From the NCBI GenBank assembly GCA_051294905.1, contig CM119376.1:8494001-8558000 (forward strand): a stretch of 64,000 bases of DNA. Reading direction: 5' to 3'. Made by a program: the position numbers and the translations under genes. Origin of the DNA: Botryllus schlosseri. Lineage: Eukaryota. Below, piece by piece: positions 487-51,000 of this stretch; position 1 is the first letter of the stretch, and the number at the start of each line of letters is the position of its first letter. The notes beneath the pieces are model-generated. The model ran no database searches. It was given only the letters and a program-made list of their open reading frames with translations, and was not told where the DNA came from.

Positions 487-3400
487 ATGATCTGCGACAG
501 AGTATTGCACGTGGTCATATTTTTGATTGCAACAACATCGTCAACGGATACAGGTAAGTGTACAAGTTCCATTTCACTGCCGTATGAGTAAGAACATCCC
601 TGAAGGGGCAATGAATTTCTACAAACCTCAGTCTCATTTTGATAAGTATCGATAAATTGACTTCGCCTTTTCTGTAAGCCATTCTTTCATTAGTCGCTTC
701 AGTCACATATCGTCATCGGCGAGATTGCAATCAGTGATTTTAACATTCAAGGAAATCCTATCACTGAGACATTGTTATCACGATAACCCTATTTGTAGTA
801 ACGAAGAAATGAGCCTTGAGTCGTTCAAACTCCTAGTGCGATATACTGGTATGATTTGCTAGCTATTCCCGAAGCAGAGGCAATATCCACCCGTGAAAAT
901 ATTTAAGTAATAGTTACATTTTACAGCCTATTGTTCTATAAATTCATTGTCATTCTTCTTCTGTTTTAGATAGGAAATGTAGACGGTACGAAATGACTTC
1001 GTCTCCCGTCAAAAAGTCGGCTGGTGGTACAGACAGAGTGATGGTTCGCTGCGACGGACGCAAATTGACGCAACTAACATCTGCCTTCCTTTACGAGACA
1101 TTGGTTGGTCCGCCAACGCCAGTGGAAGGTTTGAGATGTTTTAGCTGTTGTTTTGGTAAAACTTTAGGTAGCACGGCAACTGTATACCAACAAAAAATGG
1201 TACCCGAGTAAAAGTGTTTAAGAAACACCGATATGGACGATATTATTTATATTTTTCACGGTGTTTTTTGTCAGATAATTGTGATATGAATGTTAGATAA
1301 GCGATTCAAAAACTCATAAGATGAAATAACACAGTTTCATCGAGCACGGCATCACGTAAGTTGACCTTTAGATCATACGTAATTGGCATGCCGGTGTAAA
1401 CACTGCAAGCCATCTTTTGTGATCAAGGAACGCTTTTCTCCTCCCTTGGACGTGCTGCATGTACGCAATTTCCGATTTTCATTGCTTAAAAGGTGAATTA
1501 ATCAATAGTGTCACAATAGAATGACGTCGGACATTTATAAGCTCACAGTAAATTATGGCTTCTTTTGGCCTGAAATATATTCATCCCCGACTTGTTACTA
1601 TATACGAGATATAAGGATAACTGTGCAGAATCAGGTACTAATGAATTGTATGAACTAATGACAGTGCAAGCAGATGTTGAGGTCGGGACTGGTATATTAC
1701 ACGATGAGCCACGCACTACATCTGCCGAACCGATCTACCAGCTCAATTTACAAAACGCAGATTTGGAAACGATTCAAGATGGTGTCTTTCGTACAGTACC
1801 TACGTTAGAGGTATGTGCTTGCCGCCAATGTGTTTGGTAACAATTGTTATATGAATAGATTCCTTCTCACCAGGTGTTAAATCTAAGAATGAACAGAGTG
1901 AAGGAAATAGGGAAGCGCACATTTGAAGGACTACTCGGTCTGAAAGACTTAAACCTGGGGCGAAATGACATTGCAACAGTCGAGCCATTCTCGTTTTCCC
2001 AGCAAAACGAGCTTGTCTATTTGACATTAGCGGAGAACCACTTAGAAGAATTGAGTTATTTCACTTTCAGAGGTCTCACCAGAGTAAGACGAATGATCTT
2101 TATAAGTGTGGCGGCATTCAGATGTCCATATCTAACTGATTCTTCCTTCTTTCAGTCACAATATCTGAATTTGGAGTTGAACAACATCACCGCGTTGCGT
2201 GCCGGTACCTTTGCGGCTATGCCAAATTTGGAAAACTTGCGTCTCTCGCTGAACAGGATTAGAAAATTGGACGGAGGAATGCTCGCAGGACTTTATCGCT
2301 TGAAGCACCTGTATTTCACTTCGAATAACTTGGAGCGTATTTTGGACGGCGCATTTCGATCGAACAAAAGATTAGAATCCTTGGATTTATCGGGTAATGG
2401 TTTACCTTGAACAATCTACGGATAACTTAATTCTATTTATACCTTTTAGAATTTAGACAGACGCTCTATGATGACATGTTAAATGAGTAATATTAATAAG
2501 ACATTATTATCCATGACTAACGCGAATTTGAATTATATAATGGTTACTATTTATGGCTTTGGCATTTTACCCCCTCCCAATGTATTTTATTGACTGCCAA
2601 TGTTCAATAGTTTATACATATAGTAAAATTAAATTATATATAATATGCTGTGACTTTGTATGATTTCACTGTTTGGTTATTACCGATCTGTAAGACTACG
2701 TATTGCATCAACGTAATCGATTTCAATTAGGTTTACTTCTGAAACTCGCGATTACGACTGCGATAACGATAACACCAAACTCTACCGGGATTCGATTACG
2801 ATTAAGTGGAAAAGTGATTACCGCTATGCACGATTACTTCTAAATAGTTTTATCGAACTTGAGCCGTGGACAAATATTGGAACACAATATTACGGTTTAG
2901 ATGAGGCTGGTCCATGCGATGACAAATTTTTGAAAATTATCTTGTCATTTGCTTTTAGCGTCGCAACATGTCCGTTGAATAAGATACGTCGGGTTCAATC
3001 AGTCAATAGACGTCAGATTATATTTTCATCTGATCAAGACACACACAATGTACAATGCGATAAGGTGCAATGGGATGTAATGAACAGATAGGATGATGCC
3101 GAACGACCAGTTGCGGTATCTTAAACTAGCATCCACCTCGACCTAGTGCCCGGTGGCACAGATCTCTTTCGAAGTTACTCTCTATTCCGCGGCTCTTTAT
3201 TTGCTCTTTCCATTCTTTGTGAGTGCGTTCTTTCATCGCGTCTTTTTCCGGGCTTTTGTCGCCGTCAGAACAGCGACACGTGGGAAGATAAGCTACTATG
3301 CTAACTCCCCCGCTGGTTATTTCTTGTTGAGTTTACACCTTAGTCCTCTTAGGACTAAGTTTTGAAGTAGTCGTCCATTTGCAACCCAATCGATTCTACA

Positions 3401-8129: not shown

Positions 8130-10828
8130 CAGGGTTGTAATGACTCGAGTCATGACTCGACTCGAGTCAGACTCGAGTCACGTTTTTTTTGTGACTCGAC
8201 TTGACTCGAGTCATTTTCTTGAAATGGGAAAATGACTCGACTCGACTCGAGTCAATATTTGAATTGACTCGACTTGTACTCGAGTCATTACGCATGACTC
8301 GACCCAAGTCAATGACTCGGCTTATTTTATATGACTTGAAGATGAATAAATTTGCGAATCGTAATGGCTAGTTCAACACATCTGACGAATTCTGCCGACA
8401 TCGCTATTTGTCACCACTACTTTCGTTGCACTCGTCTGATATCAGATATGCCGCCGCAAAAACAACAGACAATGGTACCATAGTGTCCTATATGGTGTCG
8501 ACACAACCAAATCTCACGCCCCAAAGAATTGATTCACGTCACAATTTCGATTTGGCAACAGGCAATTTTAAGGTCATTTTTGACCGGCTTGGCGAGCATT
8601 AAATTTGGTAAAACGGGTATCAATCGAAAGCTGACTCCGCACTGATTACGAAAATATAAATGTTATTCCGCTCGTGGCCCTGGAACCCCCACAATCAGCC
8701 TCGAATTTTTCATTGTTATGGAGATCGGCATTGGGACGCAATAATGCTGTCTGGCTCTTTTGCTCTTGAGCTACCCTCTCGTTTCGCCAGACAGCATTGT
8801 TGCGTCCCAATGCCAATCAGGGTAGTACCAACTACCAACCCTGCTCTCCCTCTCACTCTACAACCATGCAATTAGGCACACTATCACTGTCAATTACTTG
8901 CGCGCATTAGTGGAGGCATTGAAAAATTCTATTTTAAAGCGTTTTGCAGGAGTGTTTGTAAATGTGAACATGATCACAACTGATGAGTCTTTGGATTGGC
9001 CTATCGGTAATCCCAAACCGTTTGGTGACACCATCTTCTTCACATCATGCGTGTTCGATCCGAAATTTGCTTTCCATTAGCTTATGGATCTAAATTGCTC
9101 AGAACAATCCCGAATTGCACTGCGGCAGAAAATAATCGAGTTGATGATGACTGAGCCTGACACTCATTCATACAGGATCACCAGTCAAGGTACAAAATCA
9201 TCAGACGAAGAGGTACTAGATCCTCCGCAATCAAAGTACTTGAGACTTTTCAATTATACAAGCAAACAATCGAAGCAAAGTTCAATTAGACCCAACGCAA
9301 TGACTCAGATAGTCAAGTACTTGGAAGAGACTGATAAGCTCATGTGTAGATTTGAAAGCGATGATTCTTTGCATTTTTGGGCGACTCGAAAGAATGAGTA
9401 TCCTATGCTCTTCAGTGTGGTTCAAAAATGCTTATCAATTCCTCCATCTAGTGCACCAGTGGAACGTGTATTCAGTAGATGTGGATTTATTCTAAGGCCA
9501 TGCCGCTCTAATATATCTGAGGATCTCCTTTCCACTTTGATATTTTTAAAGTGTAACTCATCATTGACGTGATCTGCTGTCTGTTTTGTTAGGTATGTGC
9601 ATTGTGCATGTGAGTAATAATGAATGACTAATGCTGTGTGATATTTGTAGAATAGGACTGTTCAAAAGTAACTTCTTTTTTATTTTACTCGGTGGCTACT
9701 TGATGAAATTGTTACGTTGCATAAAAAGAACATTGAATCTGGCTCAATTTTAAAAAGTAGAATCAATGATATGATAGGAGAAAATTTTGGATTTGAAAAT
9801 AAATGAAGTATTTTTAGTGAGAAATTCTTTCATATAATATAATTACATACTAGTAGTAAGCCGACTATTTTTTCATATCCAAAATATTCTACTCTAATAA
9901 CTTCATTTCTTCTAGTTGGAATTTGCTATGAATCCTATTTTTACACAATGTAACAATATCATGAGATAGCCGGTAAAATTCGAAAATCTCTAGTTGTAAT
10001 TGGTAAAATTCGAAAATCTCTATTTGTAATTAATCTAAATTTTTTTTCATAGCATTGGTTTCTACTGGTTGGAGTTGAGCCAAATTTGATTTTTTTAGGC
10101 AATCTAACAATTTAAAGAAGTAGCCGAAAAACTTGAAAAAATGTTTTTGAACAGCCCCATTGTACAATTATTCCTCTAATGCTCTGTAGCTGCGATGCCA
10201 TTGGGAAAACCTTAAGTAATATCAAAAGGTATCTGTTTTTTGTCACTGCACAATGCACATAGCTGCATGCACGCTTTTACAGCAGGCTGGCCTGGTGTAA
10301 ATACCTCTACATAAACATGCATATGTTGATTCTCTATCAGCTGGTATCTTGACGTGAACTCGTTGGTTTTCTATCAGCAATTTATGAGCTATCGTCGATG
10401 TGCTTATCATAAAAACTGAATGCTTGAATTGGTGATGTATCAGACTGACAAGACAGATATTTGATTTTACGTTCTAACTTAGTGAAGTTATCTGTAGCAT
10501 CGGTAAATGAGGCCAGGACCTATCCGTTAACTGCCTAAATAAACACGTGCCAAAACGCTGATAGGGACAAAATGAGCATGTTTGGCAAGCTAGGAATTTG
10601 ATATCACCCAAGCAGGATTGAAAACATGAGCTGAACATGACTTCAATACTGTGACTTGGACTCGACTCGAGTCATAACACTATGACTCGGACTTGACCCT
10701 TTGAACGGTGACTTGGACTCGGACTCGAGTCGGTGATGAATTGAAAATGACTCGACTTGACTCGAGTCAAAACCACAAAAGTAAGATTGACTCGTGACTC
10801 GGAACCATGTGACTTGGTTACAACCCTG
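8130..10828 (+). mobile_element. Internally deleted hAT transposon (GACTCGAGTC subterminal repeats)
   Basis: TIR CAGGGTTGTAA, exact 8-bp TSD ATGATATG (8122-8129 / 10829-10836), transposase remnant inside. Confidence 0.93.
8898..9572 (+). pseudogene. hAT transposase C-terminal remnant including the dimerisation domain
   Basis: Two same-frame ORFs separated by one TAG (9078-9080). Motifs LKRF...FDPKF and FWATRKNEYPML...LSIPPSSAPVERVFS...LSTLIFLKCN. The N-terminal part is absent. Confidence 0.88.
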
Positions 10829-11706: not shown

Positions 11707-12732
11707 TCAGTTGTCTTCTTGGATGAAGGCATTTTCGCTTTTCAAATCAGACAGGTAATCTTTAACATTGGAAAACCCATGAAATCTGGCAAGCCCGATC
11801 AGAATCCCAGTAGCTGCCTTACCGGCTCGGTTTCTGCAAATGCTGCAGTTACAGAACCCCCTGCAAACAGGGCACGACCAGTCGGGGTCCAACAAGGCAT
11901 CGTGCACCGACTCGCCATAACGGTTTTTCAGACACGGCCCGCAAAACTGCCCCCTCACGCCGACACACTCCTTGTTCCTGCAGCACGACTTTGTGTCCAT
12001 AGTTTTCTGCCGGCACTGATGACAACTGGTGCCGTTGACAGCGTCGTACTTCTTACCGACCGAGTGTACCGCAATATTTAGCAGCATATCATCAGTAACG
12101 TCTTTCACATCGATGATCACATGCTCCTGAGCCAAAGATGATCTCGAATAAGACCTTTTTTTCTTCGGGGACAAGCAATTCAAATCGGATTTCCTTTTAG
12201 GCCCGAATCGGACTATAAGTTTGGGCTTGATGTCATCTTCGTCTTCCTTATAATTTGGATCTCCGAGTTTAGAACGTCGTCTGGTCACTGGCGGTAAACT
12301 ACGGGTGGCGTAAACTGGATTTCTACGATACGATCTCCTCGAAGATTGCAGCGTTTTGAGCGTGGATGGCGATGTAGTTGCCATTTTCTTGAATACTGCG
12401 TCGTTACGTAGGTCAGACATCAAATTTTTTAAGAGGCTGCGCCTTTCTTTCATTGCATTTTCGCGTTGGCTGGTGGCTTCCTCGTAATCCGAATCCGAGA
12501 GAATATCGGAATCAGAACCTGAATCTAATTCCCGGCCGCTGCTCCCGTATCCTGACGTCTTCGCGTTGCTGTCCTGGCTGCAAATTTCCAATTCTACAGG
12601 GTCACTCGAGAAGGGCTTGCTGGTAATTCCGTCGATTTCGGAATCGGAAAATCCAAGAAATTCATCAGTTTCATCTTCGGTTTCAGTAAAAATGTTCTGC
12701 AACTTTGTGCGCGATTCAGATTCGTAGTCCAT
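11707..12732 (-). CDS. CDCA7: CDCA7/CDCA7L-family zf-4CXXC_R1 protein, 341 aa, CDS without introns
   Basis: C-terminal SCHQCRQKT...CRNKEC...GQFCGPCLKNRYGE...WSCPVCRGFCNCSICR...ATGIL is the 4CXXC_R1 finger. Central RENAMKERRSLLKNLMSDL resembles the HELLS-binding helix. N-terminal acidic DEFLGF motif. Probable 5'UTR intron (acceptor ttttag 6 nt before ATG, donor near 12944). Confidence 0.95.
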   Translation of the reverse strand: MDYESESRTKLQNIFTETEDETDEFLGFSDSEIDGITSKPFSSDPVELEICSQDSNAKTSGYGSSGRELDSGSDSDILSDSDYEEATSQRENAMKERRSLLKNLMSDLRNDAVFKKMATTSPSTLKTLQSSRRSYRRNPVYATRSLPPVTRRRSKLGDPNYKEDEDDIKPKLIVRFGPKRKSDLNCLSPKKKRSYSRSSLAQEHVIIDVKDVTDDMLLNIAVHSVGKKYDAVNGTSCHQCRQKTMDTKSCCRNKECVGVRGQFCGPCLKNRYGESVHDALLDPDWSCPVCRGFCNCSICRNRAGKAATGILIGLARFHGFSNVKDYLSDLKSENAFIQEDN

Positions 12733-16479: not shown

Positions 16480-18660
16480 TGGCTCGTGCATTGCATCATA
16501 TCAATTCGTTTCAACTTTCTGAGGTTTCGAGAAAGATTTCGACGTTTCAGGAATCGCACACGTGCATCTCATTTCCAAGGCAAAAGCACAGTACAATGAG
16601 AGATTTTTCAACAGACACAAAAAGGACACTCGAAAAACATTGTCAGGACTTAACTCTCTCCTACATCGGAAAAAAGGCCATAACTCTGTTTCGGAAATTG
16701 TGAATTCGGATAATGGAAACAAACTTTCAGACCCGGCAGCCATCGCGAATCACTTCAATGAATATTTTTGTAACGTAGGCCCTAATATTGCTTCTTCTAT
16801 TACAAAACCTGTGTCGGCCAGGCCAGAGGTCAGATTGATATCCCAGTCGATTGTGCTTGAACCTTCGACCAAATACGAAGTAGAAGTAGCCATCCACAAA
16901 CTGAAATCGCACAAGGCCGTCGGCTATGACCAAATCCCATCATGGTTTTTAAAAATGATAAGCCTGCATATCGGTCAATATATGGCCCATTTTTTCAACT
17001 TCATGATAGAAAATGGAGTCTACCCAAGCTATCTAAAAAAGCCAGAGTAGTCCCTGTACACAAAGCTGGGGATAGAACTAATATCACCAACTACCGTCCG
17101 ATATCCGTTCTCCCATGCATCGGGGTTGTATTCGAAAAGTTGCTCCTCTCCCGCCTGTCCTCATTCCTCGCCAAAATGTCTATCATTTCCCCTCAACAAT
17201 TTGGCTTCCGAAACAAACACCAAACCGCACATGTCCTCCTAACAGTGGCCGAGCAGTATTATGATATCTCAGAGAAGCGAAATGTGGGATGTAGCATTTT
17301 TCTCGATCTAAAAAAAGCGTTTGACTGCGTAGATCATAAAATTCTCATCTCGAAATTGGCGCGTTACGGACTTCGGGCCCACAACTTGAGCTCATGAAAA
17401 GTTACCTCACTGGACGCCAACAAATGGTTGCGATCTCAAACACATTGTCCTCTCATCACCTGGTGACCTGTGGTGTGCCCCAAGGCTCAGTACTTGTTGG
17501 ACCGGTCCTCTTCACCTTATATGTCAACGACATTTTTGAAACCTCCTCATTGAACACCACACTGTTCGATGATGATACTCACCTCCTCTCTTCCGCATCT
17601 TCGACGGCAGAGCTGGATGCCCTGACTGGTGACCAAATGCCTAAAGTCCATAAGTGGACGGCCAAGAACAACCTTTGCATAAACGCCTCGAAATCCCAAT
17701 TGCTGACAGTAAATTAAAAAAATAACCTAACCGTTAATATCGCTGTTCAGCCCGTTTCCAACACAGATAATGCCAAATATCTCGGGGTTTTACTGGACTC
17801 GAACATGTCCTGGAAGAGTCATATTCAGTCCCTAGAAACTAAATTATATCACCGAAGTGCGGCCTGTTCTACAGCCTTGGGCGCTTCATGCCTACATGGG
17901 TTCTTCTGATACTCTTTAAATCCTTAATCCAATCGAAGTTACATTATGGCATCCTCTGTTGGGGGGCTGCCAGTAAAACTGCACTCAAGCCACTGCAAAA
18001 ACTACAGCATAAAGCACTCCGAATCATAGCTAGGGTCCCAAAGGGGCCTGGCTGCCCATCCAATAAGTCGCTGCTGAAGAGATTCGGCGTCCTAAACATA
18101 GAAGATATGCGGAAACTAGAAATCGCCAAGTTTATGTATCAGTTTCACTGCGGTCGTTGCCCCGAATATTTCAATGACTTCTTTACCTCTGAATCAAAAG
18201 CGCACAAGTAGGCTACAACACACGCGCGTCCACGTCGTCCAAATATCATATGATCGACCGAAAAGATCATCGCTCTATCAAATATGCCGGACCTGATGTG
18301 TGCAACAGTATCCCGCCGGCCATCAGGCAGTCGACGAGCATGTCCAGATTCAAGTCGAAATACAAGCAATTACTACTAAATAAATACAGTCCATCCTCAA
18401 GATTACCGGACCACGACTGACCTATCGATCTCGCTTCCCATGACATGCCGCCCTATTTCTTGTTACTTCCTTTTTCTATACTATCTACTTTAATTTCATT
18501 CAGTGTGCATGCCTCCTCTTTACATCGCCTAGGCCAAGGTGGGTGTCTGATTCCATAGACAACTCCTAGTCGCTTCGACATCTTCCTTTCTTTTCATAGT
18601 ATCGCATTTTTTGTGGTGTATTGAACTGATAAAATAGCTAATAAACCAATGATGATGATT
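16480..18660 (+). mobile_element. 5'-truncated, decayed non-LTR retrotransposon (CR1/L2-group ORF2, RT domain)
   Basis: [34 protein letters not shown], degenerate FADD (LFDDDT), KYLGV across several frameshifted ORFs. 3' AATAAA plus (ATG)n tail at ~18640-18658. Confidence 0.92.
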
Positions 18661-34565: not shown

Positions 34566-37210
34566 TCATCTTCTCCTGCAGTATGACTGCAAGTCGGCAA
34601 TCGAGCATTGTCCATAACAGCACCGGGAGTTGATGGTCTGCCCAACGAAGTTTCGTCTTGTTTGATGTCGCCGGGATCTCGCCAAACTTCTGCAACAAAA
34701 TTAGGCATTCGATTTTAACGTATTATACAAACTCACAAACGCAACGACACAATCTAACACTAAACCAGAGGTCTCAAACACGGCCGTGAAGTTTTTACGT
34801 GCTGCCCACGACAATATTCTATCAAACTTCCCGAGCTAATTTCTTCCCTGTTGGTGGCGCGATTTTTTCTTATTATTCAAATCTTATGCTTGATCTAAAT
34901 AGTTTATTACTTTCCAATACCCCGAGCGTAACCAACATTAATTTGACCATCTCTTATATCTGGTTTCAAGAGTTTCATCTTTCCATGTGACATTATATTC
35001 TCCAGGATAAACCTATATATGCATATTGTAGAACTTGTGTAGGATATGTTGCGTCTTTTCAACAGCCTTTGTTGCGAAAAGCACCACTGAATGATTTTAT
35101 ATATAATAGCAATAGGATCTGCATGCGGCGTATGTAGTGTTTGCAGTAAACAACGGCCGTACAATGTGCACAGGTACAGTGATCATTATGATCCAGAATC
35201 GCAAACTAGTGACGAGAGTAATCATCCACGAAACAATACCAAATTTAATCGCAAAACAGACGCGAACCGAGAAGAAAGTTTTTTTGCGAGCTCGAACCTC
35301 CGAATTACTACGGCTAGCATACCGAAAACAAACTTGTACCCTGAGTTCGCACAATCCTTACGTTACACACATTTTAGGAATTCGAAAGTCACTATTAGGT
35401 AGTCGTAATTAAATTACCACTGTCAGCTGTGCCATTGCCATATAAATGCACAGGCATAGTTGGACTGTTGATGACGTTTTCAATCAATGCTTTAAAGTCT
35501 GCTCCGTCACGAGAACAAATGGCCGTCTGTGGCAATCGAGAGTATTACGTCACAAGGTCCTGTTGACTTGGCCCTCATTTCCTTTTGCCTCGCGACTGAG
35601 TCAATCTCCTTAGTCCTTATTCTCCGGCAAGCTGTTTGTATGTTACGTGGGTGCACTGCTGATTACGAGTTTGTTGGACAGCTGTATTGTTTGTTATGAT
35701 TTTGCGTAGTGATTTGACCTGATTGCTCCGTTTCGACCGAACGGGTCCTGAGTAGCATTTTATTTATATTTTCACAACAAACTGATTGAATTACCGCCAT
35801 CTCGTCGATATTTCGTGTCCACAGATTCAAAACAAAAGCTTATGTCATCACGAGAATGTTGTTTTTGGAATGTTGCTCAAAATTACATCATGATGTAAAT
35901 CTACATCGGAGATGATAGATGCAGTAATACTGATGTTAACATACATTCGAGGGTTGAATTTTATGACATGTCTATGCATTTATCCATCACATTACTTCAG
36001 TGACTCATATACATAGTAAGTCGCTAAGAAACTTACCGATTCGAACGCTTCACGCGATTGATGAATTCCATTTCTTCTTCGGATAAAATGTCTTCTGATC
36101 TCTCTGAAAAAAAGTGAAAAAACTGTGTTTAAATATTAGAATAACGTTAAAATATTTATAGATATAATATGGATATTTTGAAAGTGAGGTTCATCCCCTC
36201 TTCACATATACTGCAAATAAATAACGTGCGAAGTATGATAATTTGTTGTCAAATATTATCATATTTCCAAGAATATGCTCCAATGAAGGACGTTACTCAA
36301 AAATTTTAGTTGGCTGAATTCTATTCGTTTTTATGCGCCAAGCTACATCAGTATACTGGGTGATGTTTACTTGAGCCTTTTATTTGAATTATTTCTTCGC
36401 AGCTATGAGCTGCCAGTCGGTGACACTGACATCCGTAATCGGTCTTACTCGTTAATTAAATCCATTCCGCATACACTCAAGATTAGTCAAATCAAAACCA
36501 ATATAAATCTCGTACGCAAATGTAAATATAATTGAAAGCCATTATTATCTCGTGAGACACATCTGCGCTCGGAGAAATAGCGAGTTCTGCAGCTGATATT
36601 TGAGATCATCGCACAGACTTATTGCTGCAAGAAAACTATTTTCCTAAATACCCGCTAGAGTTCAGTTTCTCAAATATATCACGTCATAAACGAAGGGAGA
36701 CATTTGTGAGGATGAAATAGAATTTACACGAAATCCGATGATATTCATACCTAATGTGGTAAAAATAATTGTTGCTGTGCGTAGGCTTGTGACGAAAATA
36801 TTATGGGACTTCATTTGCCTCCATTGACCTATGCAGGGGGTCAAGCGTTTGCAGTTTCATACTTGAAGCACGTACAAACTATCGCAGATCCTCAAAGCAA
36901 GATTGCAAAAGGAATGATATCGCAGCTTACTTGTACGTCTAAAACCACAGTTGATTCTGCATATGGCCAGGGTGTTTCTATTTCTCGTCGTTCTGCATAG
37001 AACCCTGGAGGCAATGTAACATTTTTTCTGTTCCGCGATACCATTCCGACAATACGAGTTCAGCTCGTCGACTAATAGCGAGCCACACGCTTGTATATTG
37101 CCCCTCCGCCTATACGGGCGCCTCCTTACGGCATTGCTCGCCGCGAATGCCGCCACAATGATGACTAAACAGATCGTGGACGTAATACTCATCTTCACAA
37201 GTCGGGCCAT
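34566..37210 (-). CDS. Insulin-like preprohormone (156 aa) with an extra four-cysteine module on the B chain
   Basis: Exons 37210-36931 (phase 1), 36103-36037 (phase 2), 34689-34566, all with strong GT-AG sites. Protein: signal MARLVKMSITSTICLVIIVAAFAAS; B chain ACGSLLVDELNSYC; insert KCYIASRVLCRTTRNRNTLAICRINCGF; TKR / acidic C-peptide SEDILSEEEMEFIN / RVKR; A chain TINSRCCYGQCSIADLQSYCRRR-stop. An acceptor directly precedes the ATG (cag|aATG), as in insulin genes with a 5'UTR intron. Confidence 0.93.
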
Positions 37211-37701
37211 TCTGATGTGGTGATTTCAACGAGCGAGCCTGGTATATATATACTTGTCGGCATTTTGAGAAAAAATAACAGTATGTACTAAAAGACCGCA
37301 GGCCGCAAATCTGTTTTTTTCATGGACCAGGAATGTCCACTCCTTGCAACAGACGCACGATCCCACGTAGCCGTAACTGTTTATCCTGAGCTGTTCATTC
37401 AGTCCCATTCCTATCATTTGTAAACGACAATAAAAATAAGTTGAATTTAGAACAAGGGTGAATCCCCTTTACGACATCAACATATCATATTCCACTATTT
37501 ATAGACCCTCTACCATGTCTACATGTAGTGATAGTATTCATGACACGACACAATTAAATGCCTCCTATGCTCTCTTGGCCTCTAAGATAAAGTGGCAGAT
37601 TAATCAATTGCTCGAATACAATGTATGTTGCTTCGTCTGCTTATAAAATCTATAGATCCGATGTAAGGACTGGAAATGTGCGTTGGTGAAGATCTAAATA
37701 C

Positions 37702-37893: not shown

Positions 37894-38317
37894 CTCCCAA
37901 CTGTATTCGGACTTTCAGCAGAAAACAGGTTGATCCACACTTTAGGGAGTGCATAATTCACGATTTTGCACGGAGCGCCGGTGGTTTCAACAAAGGAGCT
38001 ATATTTATCCGTGCAGACAGGTCCATGAACTTGGATTAAGGACCACATAATAAGACTCCCTCTTCCATACTAGCATCCGTCTCAAAAACACCCTGTGACG
38101 CGTGTAAACTAAAGGCGGAGAAAATAGAACGCCAGTCTATAAATGGCAAAAATGCCGGTAAAACTATTTCTTGGAAAATTTTTCGGCGAGTCAACATACG
38201 TTTCTGTTATCCCAGATTATTTATGACCCGCGTTATGGCAATGTTACTTTCATTTTGATAACATGCGGCGAGCATGTAGCATAAACAAGTAAACATTGAA
38301 GAGCGAAGAGGCTATAA

Positions 38318-38650
38318 CAGTGGTTCCCAACGTGGGCGATATCGACTCCCAGGGGGCGATTTAGCGGTATAGGAGGGGGCGAAAATAACGAAGGGGGCGA
38401 TAGGGGGCGATGGCGCGTTAAAACGGCTATATTGGAGTCAAGTCGGAGAAATGACCTTTTACTAGTCAACTCACGAAAATTTAGCTGTAAAAGTGTAATT
38501 TCGAAGTCGATCCGGAAAGTTGACCTTTCTTCAGTCAACTCGCCGGTGATAACAGTTTGTATGTGTTTTTCGGTTCCCAATATTTGGGGGCGATGATCGG
38601 TGTGGAGCTTGAAAAGGGGGCGATGAGTCGAAAAAGGTTGGGAACCACTG
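38318..38650. mobile_element. hAT (Buster/Charlie-like) MITE upstream of the insulin-like gene
   Basis: TIR CAGTGGTTCCCAAC, GGGGCGA repeats, exact TSD GGCTATAA. Confidence 0.92.
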
Positions 38651-40399
38651 GGCTATAAGCTGGTCATCGACACCCATACACGATTATATTGTTTGAATTT
38701 AATTCTGTCATACAGCCTAAATAAGTGTCACATAACCGTATGGGGGCAGCCAATTACAATGGCGTGCACTACAGCTTAATCTCTGATTTCAACTCACGCA
38801 CCCATCACACTTGTGAGTACTAGTATATTTCATGTCGTAATTCTGACACAACTTTTAATTTGCATTATGGAATCATACCACTGAAGAATTATTCTCAGTT
38901 AGCGCCTGATGCAAGATTGTAACGTGATCGTCAGGTATAGGGACGGTGGGATGCGAAATGTTCTGTTCGTTATGCAAACGTTATAATTTAGAGGTTCGCG
39001 TTCGACATTTAGTCGGCTGCCTCCTGTAGACATTTTTGCGAAATATCAGAAAATTGCAGAACTCCTAACAGCTTTGATCAAAATTCCTTGAATTCTAGCA
39101 CGAAGAAAAATATTTCCTTGAATTTTAGAACGAAGACCATCAAACTGACAAGAACCACCGGAATTATAGTGAATCCCAAGAATTTTGCTTGAAACATCAC
39201 GCTATTGCAGATGTAACCAATGTATTGGCTAGCTTTCGATGGAGCTCACACGGGACTTAAATTCAGTCTTGCAAAATCGTTTCTGGACTCCGAAGACCCC
39301 GTGCAGTTCAAGGACACTTGGTTTGGTACCCCAGGCCGGTCGAAAAATAGCCCGACTACGATAATTTTTCCAACAAATTGATAAAAGATGAAATCATGAT
39401 CGGACATTTTGCTGCAGTCTCTGACACCAAGCGACGCATACTCTGCATAAAACCACAGCGGCGTATAGACACCAAGGCGACAATGGTTTCCAAGAGGTTC
39501 TTGAAGGTACCGAACTCTAATATACAATTGAATAGTATATTCATATTGAAATGAACCCCAGTATTGATTTTTGTTTGAATGATCTTCATAAAAATTTCGT
39601 GTTTGCTCGAACCCGGACCTTTTAGGGATTCGCACCAACTCGACCATCCGGATGTTCTCGTTAAATTTAAATTAAGGTGCTGGAGCAATTATTATGCTCA
39701 TTTTCAAAAGACCGCTGTCGTGACTTCCAAAGATCTGCTCTGTATTATGACTGAGTGCAGGATTTATTAAATATTTTTCCGATGCGTTTGAGACGTGAGA
39801 ATCTTGCAAGCTCAAGGTGGCATCATTGATATTTTATACTGATCAATGGTCTTCGTACCTCAAGTCAGACTCTCAGGGCTTGGTCTGAATCCCCCTTTTT
39901 CAAAGGTGCATCTCTTGCAATAAGTGATATCAGCTGTCAAGAGTAGGTATTAGGTATGCACATAAATTTCATTAACTTGAAGAGTTATTTGCTAATTTAC
40001 TTCAATTGAATACAATGAAGGGTATGGTCGCAGCGAACCAGTGCCAACTATATCCAACCACAGTATTATTCGTTGTCAATATATGACCTCGTGAGGCATA
40101 TTTGCTTTTAGTGTACTTTTAAATTTAGGAGGGGCGTGAAGCATAGTACTGTTAGTTATGAGGTGCCAAAGAGAAAAGGTTAAGAATCACTTACCAATAT
40201 CAGATTTCACATTGCAATAGGCATTGGCGGCACAAGAAATCGTAGTGGTTTTGTCACATTTTAAGAATGGACTTGCTTGGTTACAATCTAATTTGCGCTG
40301 GGAATTGCATGTGTTCATTCGTTAGAGCGATTGTGTGCTTTTCTCCATCGTGCGACTGAGCAACGTGACTATTCTTGATTTCATGAGAATATTCAATAG

Positions 40400-47617: not shown

Positions 47618-48042
47618 CACTGGTTCCGAACGTGGGCGATATCGCCCCCCCCCAGTGATGTTGAGAAACAAGGGGGCGAAAATACCAAAGGGGGCGACTG
47701 GGGACGGGGGCGATAGGGCGCGAAGATGTTGGAATATCAAGTGGTATATATCAAATTAACACGATAAAAATGCGCGTGAAGACTACTTATTCTGAATATG
47801 ACGCGATGAAAGTATACTCAACGGAAAGTAGACGCGGAAACCGGTTTGCCAACCACCTACCACCTCGGAAAATGGCCTCTTTTGTGGTAAATTCTCCAGC
47901 GATCAGAGTTAGGTGAATACATTTCCCGATTATTATGTGTCCTCATTTTCGGAGCCATATTTATGGGGGGGGGGGGGGGGGGCGAAAATATGTGTCGAGA
48001 TTGATAAGGAGGTCATGAGTCGAAAAAGGTTGGGAATCACTG
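47618..48042. mobile_element. Diverged copy of the 38318-38650 MITE family
   Basis: CACTGGTTCCGAACGTGGGCGATATC ... GAAAAAGGTTGGGAATCACTG; TSD not recognisable. Further fragments at ~49973-50090 and ~51270-51480. Confidence 0.8.
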
Positions 48043-51000
48043 AACTAGGCGCATAACAACCGAGTAGCAATTCAGAACCAAATGATATGGGCGTGACGAG
48101 AATGGGGTATTGAGTTATTAATGTTGTATAAATCCGACGACTCTTATCTGTTTTGTGATGTCTCACGTGACTCAGATAATATAATTTTGATTATTTGTAA
48201 AAAAATCATTTCACCAGTAATCTTTTAGATAAGTGATACAGTGATCCAGAAGTGTTGAACTGTCGACGATTTCGAGAATTCAGACCATTCCATATCGTAT
48301 GCATCGACTATATCTGGTGACTGTCGTCGCAAGGATCATAATACAAGCTTTTCTATAGTATTTACACACAATATACATATTATACATATTTCGAAAAAAA
48401 TTAATGACATTTGTGTAAAACACGGCTTAAACCATGCTATAAACAAATTCTTTCAAAATACGTCTTGCAACCCTAGACACAAGTCATTCCTTATATTGCT
48501 CCACTAAGAAGGTTGGATTTCCAAGTAAAGCAACGGCTTCAAAACATATTTCACCTGTGAATCTTAGCTGTAAATCCGATTTAGTGATAAGTTCAAGTAT
48601 TGGCTGGCTGTCATAAAAATTTATGGAGTTTAGGGGCGATATAAAGGGATCAGTCTGTATATATTGAAATCAGAATATAAGCCAAGATGGCAAAAAATAC
48701 TTATTGCTACCATAATTCGAGCGTGCATATTCGCTATGCAAACAAGTATTCATTACCAATAAGGGTTTGACTATATCCCAAAGTGACAATTAATTTAATA
48801 ATGTAGTACTTCCGACAATTTCATTATTTTTTATTGGCGTTAATTATATCACTCTCGAAGGCTTACTGAGATTTGTGTCACCCTGACGTTGCTCGTTATG
48901 TAAGGAGATGCAGCTTGCAAGATGTTAAACAGATAACACACATAATGATATGTCTATGCATGGTTCATTCGAACAGCAGTGCTTTGGAGACAATTCAATG
49001 AAATCACCTCTTTAAAACAATTTCTATTGCTCGTTTTTTCGCACGAGTAAACAGTAAGCACTCATGATACTACTTATTAACTTGATTCCGCTCACCTGCG
49101 CTTAATATATAAATTACTGTGTAAAAGCAAATGCTTCAATTTGTGATCGAGTTAACATGATCAAATTAATAATGATCTGTGCCCATCAATTTAATTCTGT
49201 TGATTTGTTCGTAGTTAATTTGAATATATGGGGTCGACGTTGATTCGTGAGATGGAGTTGAGACCACGTGAGTAGAACTTCGATAAAACGTAGCCCAAGC
49301 CAGATTCGAATTAACGATCAAGTCAACTCAACGATCAGCTCAATGGTATCATCCCGTTTTACTGTATTACCCCAAGCTTTTCGCCAACTTGTTACAAGAG
49401 GGCCACGCACATTACGTGTTTATTAGGGATGGTGTAAACGTGAGGTTCGCGTTAGCGTTCTGTGTGTGAACCTAAGAAATCTAGAGGTTCCCGTTCACAA
49501 ACGAACCTCGGAAGGTTCTGCACTGCGAACCTTTTTCATATATTACAATTTTCGCTTCATTATTACATCTTCGATGGAAATTTATTGCATTTCAACTGCG
49601 GGTCACTCTATGCATGGCGCTGGCAGCATAAAATAAAATCAACACTAAATAAGCATGCACCTTGACCATCTCAAAAATCTTATTTGCTCCGTTACAAAAG
49701 TTTGCTCGAAATATCCAGCTTTCCGTTTGTGAATATTTAGCGACTCTCTGCTGTGAACTACACTACATGTAGTCAGCGAATGATGCTTTTGCAGCCAATC
49801 AACGGAATTGATATCGTTGTCTGATGTAAAAAATCTTGCAGGCGTACGGGATCAATCTTGATTTGATATGTTTATTGTATCATAAAAACAAAATCGGGGC
49901 GATTGGGGTGTTGGCTGCTGTATAACTTGTTAATGGGGTAATATCGGTAGCAAGTATACAATCCCGTTTTACACCAGTAGTTCCCAATGTGGGCGATATC
50001 TACCCCAGGGAGCGATTTTGGGAAACAAGGGGGCGATATTACCAAAGGGGACGACTGGGGGCGATGGGGGGGGGGCGAAAATATTAGAATGTCCTGTGAG
50101 GTACCGTAATTTCCGTGTATAATACGTCCCCATGTATAGTAGCCTACGCACCCTGAAAATGGCATGTAGATTCTGGGAAAAGCCTTTACCCGTGTAGAAA
50201 AGGTGTAACAATTATAGTCACCAGCCGTCACTGTTTCCAGATAGGTCTAGCTTAGTGCAAATCTTCCGTAGGCCTACTGCCATTGTCACATTTACACGTG
50301 CAGTGCTTGAAATTGTTACGTGATACGTTTCCAAATCTCTAATTCGTAAAACAAGACTAGTGCTTGCCAATCATCATCACCCAGGCCATAAATGATGAAC
50401 CGGCGGGCATGTCAAAAAAAAGAGAACGGCCATTCTGTTTATGTGAGTCCTGAAGTTTTGGCAGTAATGAAGTCAGTCTTCCTCGTGTTTTCTCTAATTT
50501 AAAAAATACACATTATAGCTCATCGACCATTTTGCAAATTATTGCTGCTTCGCGGACCCCCTGAAAATGCTTTCGTGGACCGCCGGTTGAGAACCAGACG
50601 TATAATGTATATGTTTACCAAAGTTGAATTACGACGACGAATAATGATCATTGACCGTCACCGTGATGACAATATTTACAATTTAGCTCGCTGAATTCAA
50701 TGTAGAAAACAATTATTACGCCACACAATATAGTTAAAATTTCTGACTCGACCCCAAACGTCTTGTCTGCTTTTTATTTGACTCGCGGGAAAAAATAATC
50801 GCCTACGCCTGATTTAGGCCAGCCATTATATCTTGCGCACATATGGCCTGCGTTGTAGATGCGATTGTTCAGGCCTGTTGTCGACGCGGTAAATTAGCAA
50901 GGATTGCGTGCGCGTGCAGCAATCGACAAATTAGCGAGGATTGCGCGTGTACAAATCACTGAGCTAATTTCTATCGTGCACAAATACCCACGGGTATCTA

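Follow-up and report, generated by a model that had tools for sequence, protein, structure and literature searches.

In the present study we have analysed an insulin-type precursor gene on the minus strand of a 64,000-nucleotide stretch of the Botryllus schlosseri genome (NCBI GenBank assembly GCA_051294905.1, contig CM119376.1, positions 8,494,001 to 8,558,000), which we call the window and in whose numbering all coordinates are given. The segment 36931..37210, with its ATG at 37210, is probably exon 1 of an intact stolidobranch prohormone gene of the insulin/insulin-like growth factor (IGF) type, in which the B domain runs into a four-cysteine stretch of some 27 residues (hereafter the module) and is followed by a polybasic site. 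The module is under purifying selection, with a constraint at the protein level that equals that of the B chain, and it survives splicing in a relative, as seen in the mRNA represented by the contig L001. Insulins with this four-cysteine extension of the B chain form a small lineage-restricted family, so far found in three stolidobranch ascidians.

Gene structure and precursor layout

Joining three exons of the minus strand yields, on translation of the window, an in-frame product of 156 residues. Exon 1 encodes a signal peptide, a basic pro-segment, the B chain, the module and the start of the polybasic site, and ends in phase 1. It is followed by intron 1 (36104..36930, phase 1), by exon 2 (36037..36103), which carries an acidic C-peptide segment and then a basic site, by intron 2 (34690..36036, phase 2), and by exon 3 (34566..34689), which carries the last part of the C-peptide, including several basic sites, then the A chain, a C-terminal RRR and the stop codon. 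Both introns are of the GT...AG type, and exons 2 and 3 are short and both have polypyrimidine-AG acceptors. A TATA-like box read from the sequence at 37243..37252 on the same strand, about 35-40 nt 5' of the ATG, is a candidate core promoter. The longest minus-strand open reading frame (ORF) at the gene spans 36857-37210 and reads through the end of exon 1; the donor used, CAA/GTAAGC at 36931/36930, matches the consensus at 7/9 positions and is the top donor among the in-frame GTs from C54 to the end of this ORF, those upstream of it reaching at most 5/9. Were intron 1 retained, the frame would stay open across 36857-36930 for 24 more codons, adding two cysteines before a stop; this read-through finds no support in L001, the spliced mRNA of a relative.

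The precursor begins with a predicted signal peptide (residues 1-27, 37130..37210), in which inspection of the translation reveals a hydrophobic core from I13 to A24, and continues with a short arginine-rich pro-segment (residues 28-36, 37103..37129) placed before the B chain. The pro-segment is longer in the Styela relatives, where R-G-R-R likewise stands just before the B chain. The B-chain core (residues 37-63, 37022..37102) contains C42-x11-C54, with C42 followed by G43 and its codon starting at 37087, and is aligned by profile to the insulin/IGF B helix. The module (residues 64-90, 36941..37021) reads C64-x7-C72-x11-C84-x3-C88-G-F, the codon of F90 ending at 36941, and starts ten residues past the second B-chain cysteine. 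This is about the distance at which the B chain of insulins ends and the C domain of IGFs begins. The polybasic site R91-R92-T93-K94-R95 has its exon-1 part at 36931..36940, while K94 is finished and R95 is coded at 36099-36103, in exon 2. The A chain (residues 129-153, 34578..34652) carries CC-x3-C-x8-C (C139, C140, C144, C153), a motif for which six-frame scanning of the window showed no second instance and which is kept in the relatives. Besides a single cysteine in the signal peptide, the precursor has ten across B chain, module and A chain. A preliminary description of this DNA had placed both cysteine series of the B chain and the module within one exon, and its reading is exact on translation, coordinates included. 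It had also placed the module before the first dibasic site (TKR); a conserved polybasic RRTKR does follow the module, but K62-K63 and R76-N-R78 come earlier in the precursor.

The window gene has in common with the insulin/IGF/relaxin superfamily a signal peptide, a B chain of the form C-G...x11...C, an excisable C-peptide flanked by basic residues and the A-chain framework; unlike ordinary insulins and IGFs it has a conserved four-cysteine stretch after the B chain, giving ten cysteines, and a basic pro-segment before it. When the family profile was compared with PDB sequences at E<=10, all the matches (29/29) were insulin, proinsulin or IGF, the best of them at an E of 0.008, in an alignment that covers B helix and A chain; our comparisons with insulin chains rest on these profile-search alignments. 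The relaxin receptor-binding cassette consists of two arginines four residues apart in the B helix, followed by I or V. It is not present here, there being no arginine between C42 and C54 in the window and a single arginine in the Styela relatives, and since the paired relaxin arginines are missing from the B helix the peptide looks to be of the insulin/IGF type. Furthermore, a phase-1 intron lies within the conceptual C domain in both the window gene and the Styela clava gene, and such an intron is the hallmark of all insulin-type genes (PMC8286064). An extra phase-2 intron has been reported in dilp7-type and multinsulin genes (PMC8286064); the window gene has one as well, which is a likeness in phase. 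The cysteine frameworks, the PDB profile matches and the phase-1 C-domain intron bear out the earlier claim of an insulin-like gene, and the window gene is, by prediction, a member of the insulin family of the insulin/IGF type.

Relatives and constraint on the module

When B chain plus module (67 residues) was searched with phmmer against 1.84 billion representatives, the sole match was P0121, at an E of 3.4e-8, in an alignment that starts just ahead of the B chain and takes in the entire module. A profile search added P0124, the product of Styela clava LOC120336578, which carries the NCBI label "uncharacterized protein" and is 73% identical to P0121. The latter is coded as one unbroken ORF on L001, a 1169-nt Logan contig (run SRR3402057). 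Aligned to the S. clava locus (L002), L001 falls into three blocks whose ends are the exon borders, with the introns missing, and it is thus the spliced mRNA of a related styelid, module included. The S. clava gene likewise has three exons (L002 10001-10370, 11219-11285 and 13183-13306); six codons separate the final module cysteine from its phase-1 intron, precisely as they do in the window gene, and its second intron is in phase 2. The window's exon 1/2 junction, KRSE, matches the contiguous KKRSE of L001. In both Styela-type precursors the called start is an upstream ATG (L001 265-345; L002 10001-10081), which places about 26 residues before the hydrophobic signal-like segment; a second in-frame Met right before that segment may be the true start, and the window gene has no such leader.

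The preliminary description had named an earlier donor, excising the module, as a point to be checked, and the spliced mRNA of the relative retains it. Just after the B chain of the window gene there is an in-frame GT (ATG/GTATCG), which matches the donor consensus at 5/9 positions versus 7/9 for the donor used, and S. clava has no GT at this position. In the relatives, removal of the module by an earlier donor is rejected; in the window gene it is unlikely.

In both P0121 and P0124 the B chain keeps the C-x11-C spacing, with glycine behind its first cysteine, and the module takes the form C-x7-C-x9/10-C-x3-C-G-Y and is followed by a polybasic run. All four module cysteines, whose conservation in related genomes had also been put forward for checking, are kept in the two relatives, so that the three sequences share the spacings x7, x9-11 and x3; the block ICRINCG is invariant in 3/3 and is the most conserved of the entire precursor. 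The relatives are only about 48% identical to the window protein over this stretch, and the retention of the four cysteines, their spacing and ICRINCG at this level of identity indicates that the cysteine pattern is not due to chance. All three sequences also have a polybasic site immediately behind the module, which makes a mature peptide with ten cysteines, as had been claimed, the natural prediction.

The constraint on each part of the precursor was estimated region by region from Nei-Gojobori counts that compare S. clava with the L001 species. The proportion of non-synonymous differences (pN) is 0.049 in the module, 0.050 in the B chain and 0.018 in the A chain, and rises to 0.26 in the region before the B chain and to 0.18 in the C-peptide, synonymous sites being near saturation in all regions; comparisons of the window with the Styela sequences give the same ranking of regions. 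The pN of the module, as low as that of the B chain, places the module in the constrained portion of the precursor, presumably the mature one. The segment past the polybasic site changes about 4 times faster than the module at non-synonymous sites, and such a fast-evolving segment between polybasic sites behaves like a discarded C-peptide.

Further searches did not enlarge the family. A word-indexed search of 5.8 billion clusters found no further protein with the motif in an insulin context, a word-indexed protein search with exon 1 gave no candidate, and a metagenome scan with the module alignment gave 142 pattern matches, none of which was confirmed. Insulins of the Ciona type were not recovered by phmmer, a weak test for such short, fast-evolving peptides. 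Synteny with S. clava consists of weak collinear matches upstream only, one of them a repeat, and what bears on whether the Styela gene is an orthologue or a paralogue is limited to the shared exon structure and this weak upstream collinearity.

Proposed mature hormone and alternative explanations

We propose that the signal peptide would be removed first, after which convertases would cut behind the arginine run preceding the B chain, behind the polybasic site downstream of the module, and ahead of the A chain; a carboxypeptidase would trim the basic tails, and the variable acidic C-peptide would be discarded. The mature product would then consist of the A chain and a long B chain, joined by the two canonical interchain bonds and with the intra-A bond, and two further disulfides would form among the four module cysteines, since no other cysteine partners remain. 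The module would thereby extend the B chain at its C terminus, as a probably helical piece stapled by disulfides. As it sits where IGFs carry the C domain, a role in recognition or stability appears most plausible, and it would most likely tune the recognition of a receptor or binding partner, or stability, rather than provide a second, toxin-like activity.

Several points weigh against this reading. The scores with the Pfam Insulin family (PF00049) all lie just under its curated cut-off of 23 bits: the A-chain piece of the window gives 22.9 bits (E 1.8e-4), and the full relatives P0124 and P0121 give 20.8 and 17.6 bits, in matches that span from B to A chain, where the long insertion between the chains costs score. 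AlphaFold, given the three-sequence alignment of the module, returned a helix-loop-helix with a mean predicted local distance difference test (pLDDT) of 64.9, and the model of the full precursor was poor (pLDDT 46.6); with both models weak, the fold and the disulfide pairing of the module are predictions. The i/i+8 and i/i+4 cysteine spacings on the two putative helices do not discriminate among pairings. The support from a spliced transcript comes from the relative, while the window gene is known from sequence alone and its proteins are absent from the databases searched. In the Styela sequences, the module loop contains a run of four to five basic residues, a possible extra cleavage site that would alter the chains. 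Finally, a family of three members limits the view of the age and spread of the module.

The basic loop leads to an alternative which we regard as unlikely, namely a further cut between module cysteines 2 and 3 that would give a three-chain hormone or a free cyclic peptide. The piece released, of 12-13 residues and ending in ICRINCG-F/Y, would be held by disulfides, or would be free if the pairing were 1-2/3-4. The two Styela-type sequences have KRRRR or KRRR in the loop, where R-x-R is invariant in 3/3, and the exceptional conservation of ICRINCG is what would be expected of a functional unit of its own; the window loop, R-T-T-R-N-R, is however a poor convertase site, nearby disulfides can, as a general statement, block convertases (PMC8286064), and the proposal is drawn from sequence, its peptide products being only predicted. 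It seems improbable that the module is an independent functional unit, be it a second recognition surface, through which this insulin would gain a partner not shared by ordinary insulins, or a separate disulfide-closed peptide with that same C-terminal block.

It is very unlikely that the precursor remains an uncut, IGF-like single-chain factor in which module and acidic segment together form a long C domain. The top PDB matches do include IGF-I and IGF-II besides insulin, and a ten-cysteine single-chain relative exists in the locust aIGF (PMC8220825), but polybasic sites stand at both ends of the variable segment in 3/3 species, and the roughly fourfold non-synonymous rate of this segment relative to the module is the pattern of an excised C-peptide.

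We give hardly any credence to the proposal of the preliminary description that the module is a truncated ShKT domain in which C2-C5 survive, pairing as C64-C84 and C72-C88, so that the hormone would be a chimera with a toxin fold and might have a second target such as an ion channel. The ShKT domain (PF01549; ShK of Stichodactyla helianthus) and the module are both small, cysteine-rich and partly helical, the latter as a predicted model; the four cysteines, with the final two spaced x3, resemble the C4-x3-C5 spacing of ShKT, and the helical model of the module alone is not at odds with a small helical toxin fold. An ShKT domain has six cysteines within about 35-40 residues, paired C1-C6, C2-C4 and C3-C5. 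The module has four and not six in 3/3 species, and with 2/6 of the defining cysteines missing, the nearest one upstream, proposed as C1, is the B-chain cysteine committed to the A chain; moreover, a four-cysteine pattern with such spacings carries little information. The profile search at a relaxed threshold that the preliminary description had suggested gave no Pfam ShK match at E<=10, whether the query was the window module, each of the three modules by itself or the full-length relatives, in scans whose HMMER filters drop most matches above an E of about 0.1. The module profile against all PDB sequences found one unrelated match, a lysozyme-like sperm protein at an E of 1.1, and no ShK-type chain. 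Foldseek of the module model against PDB gave two matches, with E of at least 8 and neither of them ShKT, in a search that is insensitive for peptides under 40 residues and that started from the weak module model. None of the Pfam, PDB-sequence and Foldseek searches thus recovered ShK, and the assignment to ShKT C2-C5 finds no support: the module is not demonstrably ShKT, and there is no evidence for a toxin fold grafted onto the hormone. The module as a duplicated A chain was rejected as well (hhalign probability 0.4%).

Known insulins, neighbouring features and implications

Three insulin-like genes have been described in Ciona intestinalis and two in Chelyosoma productum (PMC4361685). These belong to the same animal group and superfamily as the window gene and are likewise described as highly divergent and hard to place. 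No mention of extra cysteines in them was found in the accessible literature, and none of them appeared in the phmmer search with B chain plus module. Eight cysteines, together with typical convertase sites of the KR type, are found in the ambulacrarian octinsulins and in some multinsulins (PMC8286064). They add two cysteines and one bridge, whereas the window family adds four contiguous ones in an extension of the B chain; the distinction from eight-cysteine insulins drawn in the preliminary description stands for the types described in the accessible literature. The locust aIGF has ten cysteines, four above the typical insulin-like peptide, and five predicted disulfide bridges (PMC8220825); it is an IGF-type insect protein whose A-E domains are not delineable and for which cleavage into two chains is not obvious. 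Its comparison with the window family is one of cysteine number and not of position, and nothing suggests a common descent of the extra cysteines.

Literature searches for insulin-like peptides with "ten cysteines" or "five disulfide" bonds gave the locust aIGF as the sole relevant case, and peptide words from the window gene were not found in the literature. A broad survey of 2025 draws on three tunicate ligands and mentions no extra cysteines (PMC12796670). We have found no description of the architecture with a four-cysteine extension of the B chain in the literature, while insulins with extra cysteines are as such well known; the earlier remark that no example had been described holds for the exact architecture but not for the number of ten cysteines, for which the locust protein is a precedent.

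The window contains several other features. An intronless ORF of 341 residues at 11707-12732 (minus strand) encodes a CDCA7-type zinc finger (PF10497, E 3.6e-39); its top match is 67% identical and its best named relatives are all ascidian, with Styela clava at 62% followed by Clavelina, Ciona and Phallusia, which points to a stolidobranch-type ascidian other than S. clava as the source of the window. A leucine-rich repeat ORF at 1874-2410 (plus strand; LRR_8, E 1.9e-39) is probably one exon of a larger gene of this type. At 9084-9572 (plus strand) a hAT-family dimerisation domain (E 1.9e-11) marks a transposase remnant; in S. clava, too, there are genes of hAT/ZBED type, 3.6-5 kb downstream of the insulin-like gene (L002 16931-18320). 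Similarity to reverse transcriptase (RVT_1) at 16562-17397 (plus strand) falls on the second ORF of an overlapping pair read in different frames and suggests a degenerate retroelement copy. A repeat of about 85 nt is present in three copies in the window (38312-38401, 47618-47697 and 49970-50036) and in a copy at L002 3395-3481, which lies 6.5 kb upstream of the insulin-like gene in S. clava; together with the match between L002 1399-1439 and window 38616-38657, it makes up the weak collinearity upstream of the gene in both species. The repeat is neither a tRNA nor an Rfam family, and tRNA and Rfam scans of the window found nothing.

The S. clava member, with its label of an uncharacterised protein, illustrates that divergent insulin genes are missed by automated annotation. 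If the module were an independent unit released by cleavage in the basic loop, the precursor would be a prohormone with two products, in the invertebrates most closely related to vertebrates. As a disulfide-stapled extension of the B chain, the module would sit where the B chain has to move when the receptor is engaged, a place taken by the C domain in IGFs, and a conserved insulin with such a cysteine-stapled extension would represent a natural experiment on the tolerance of the insulin scaffold to additions.

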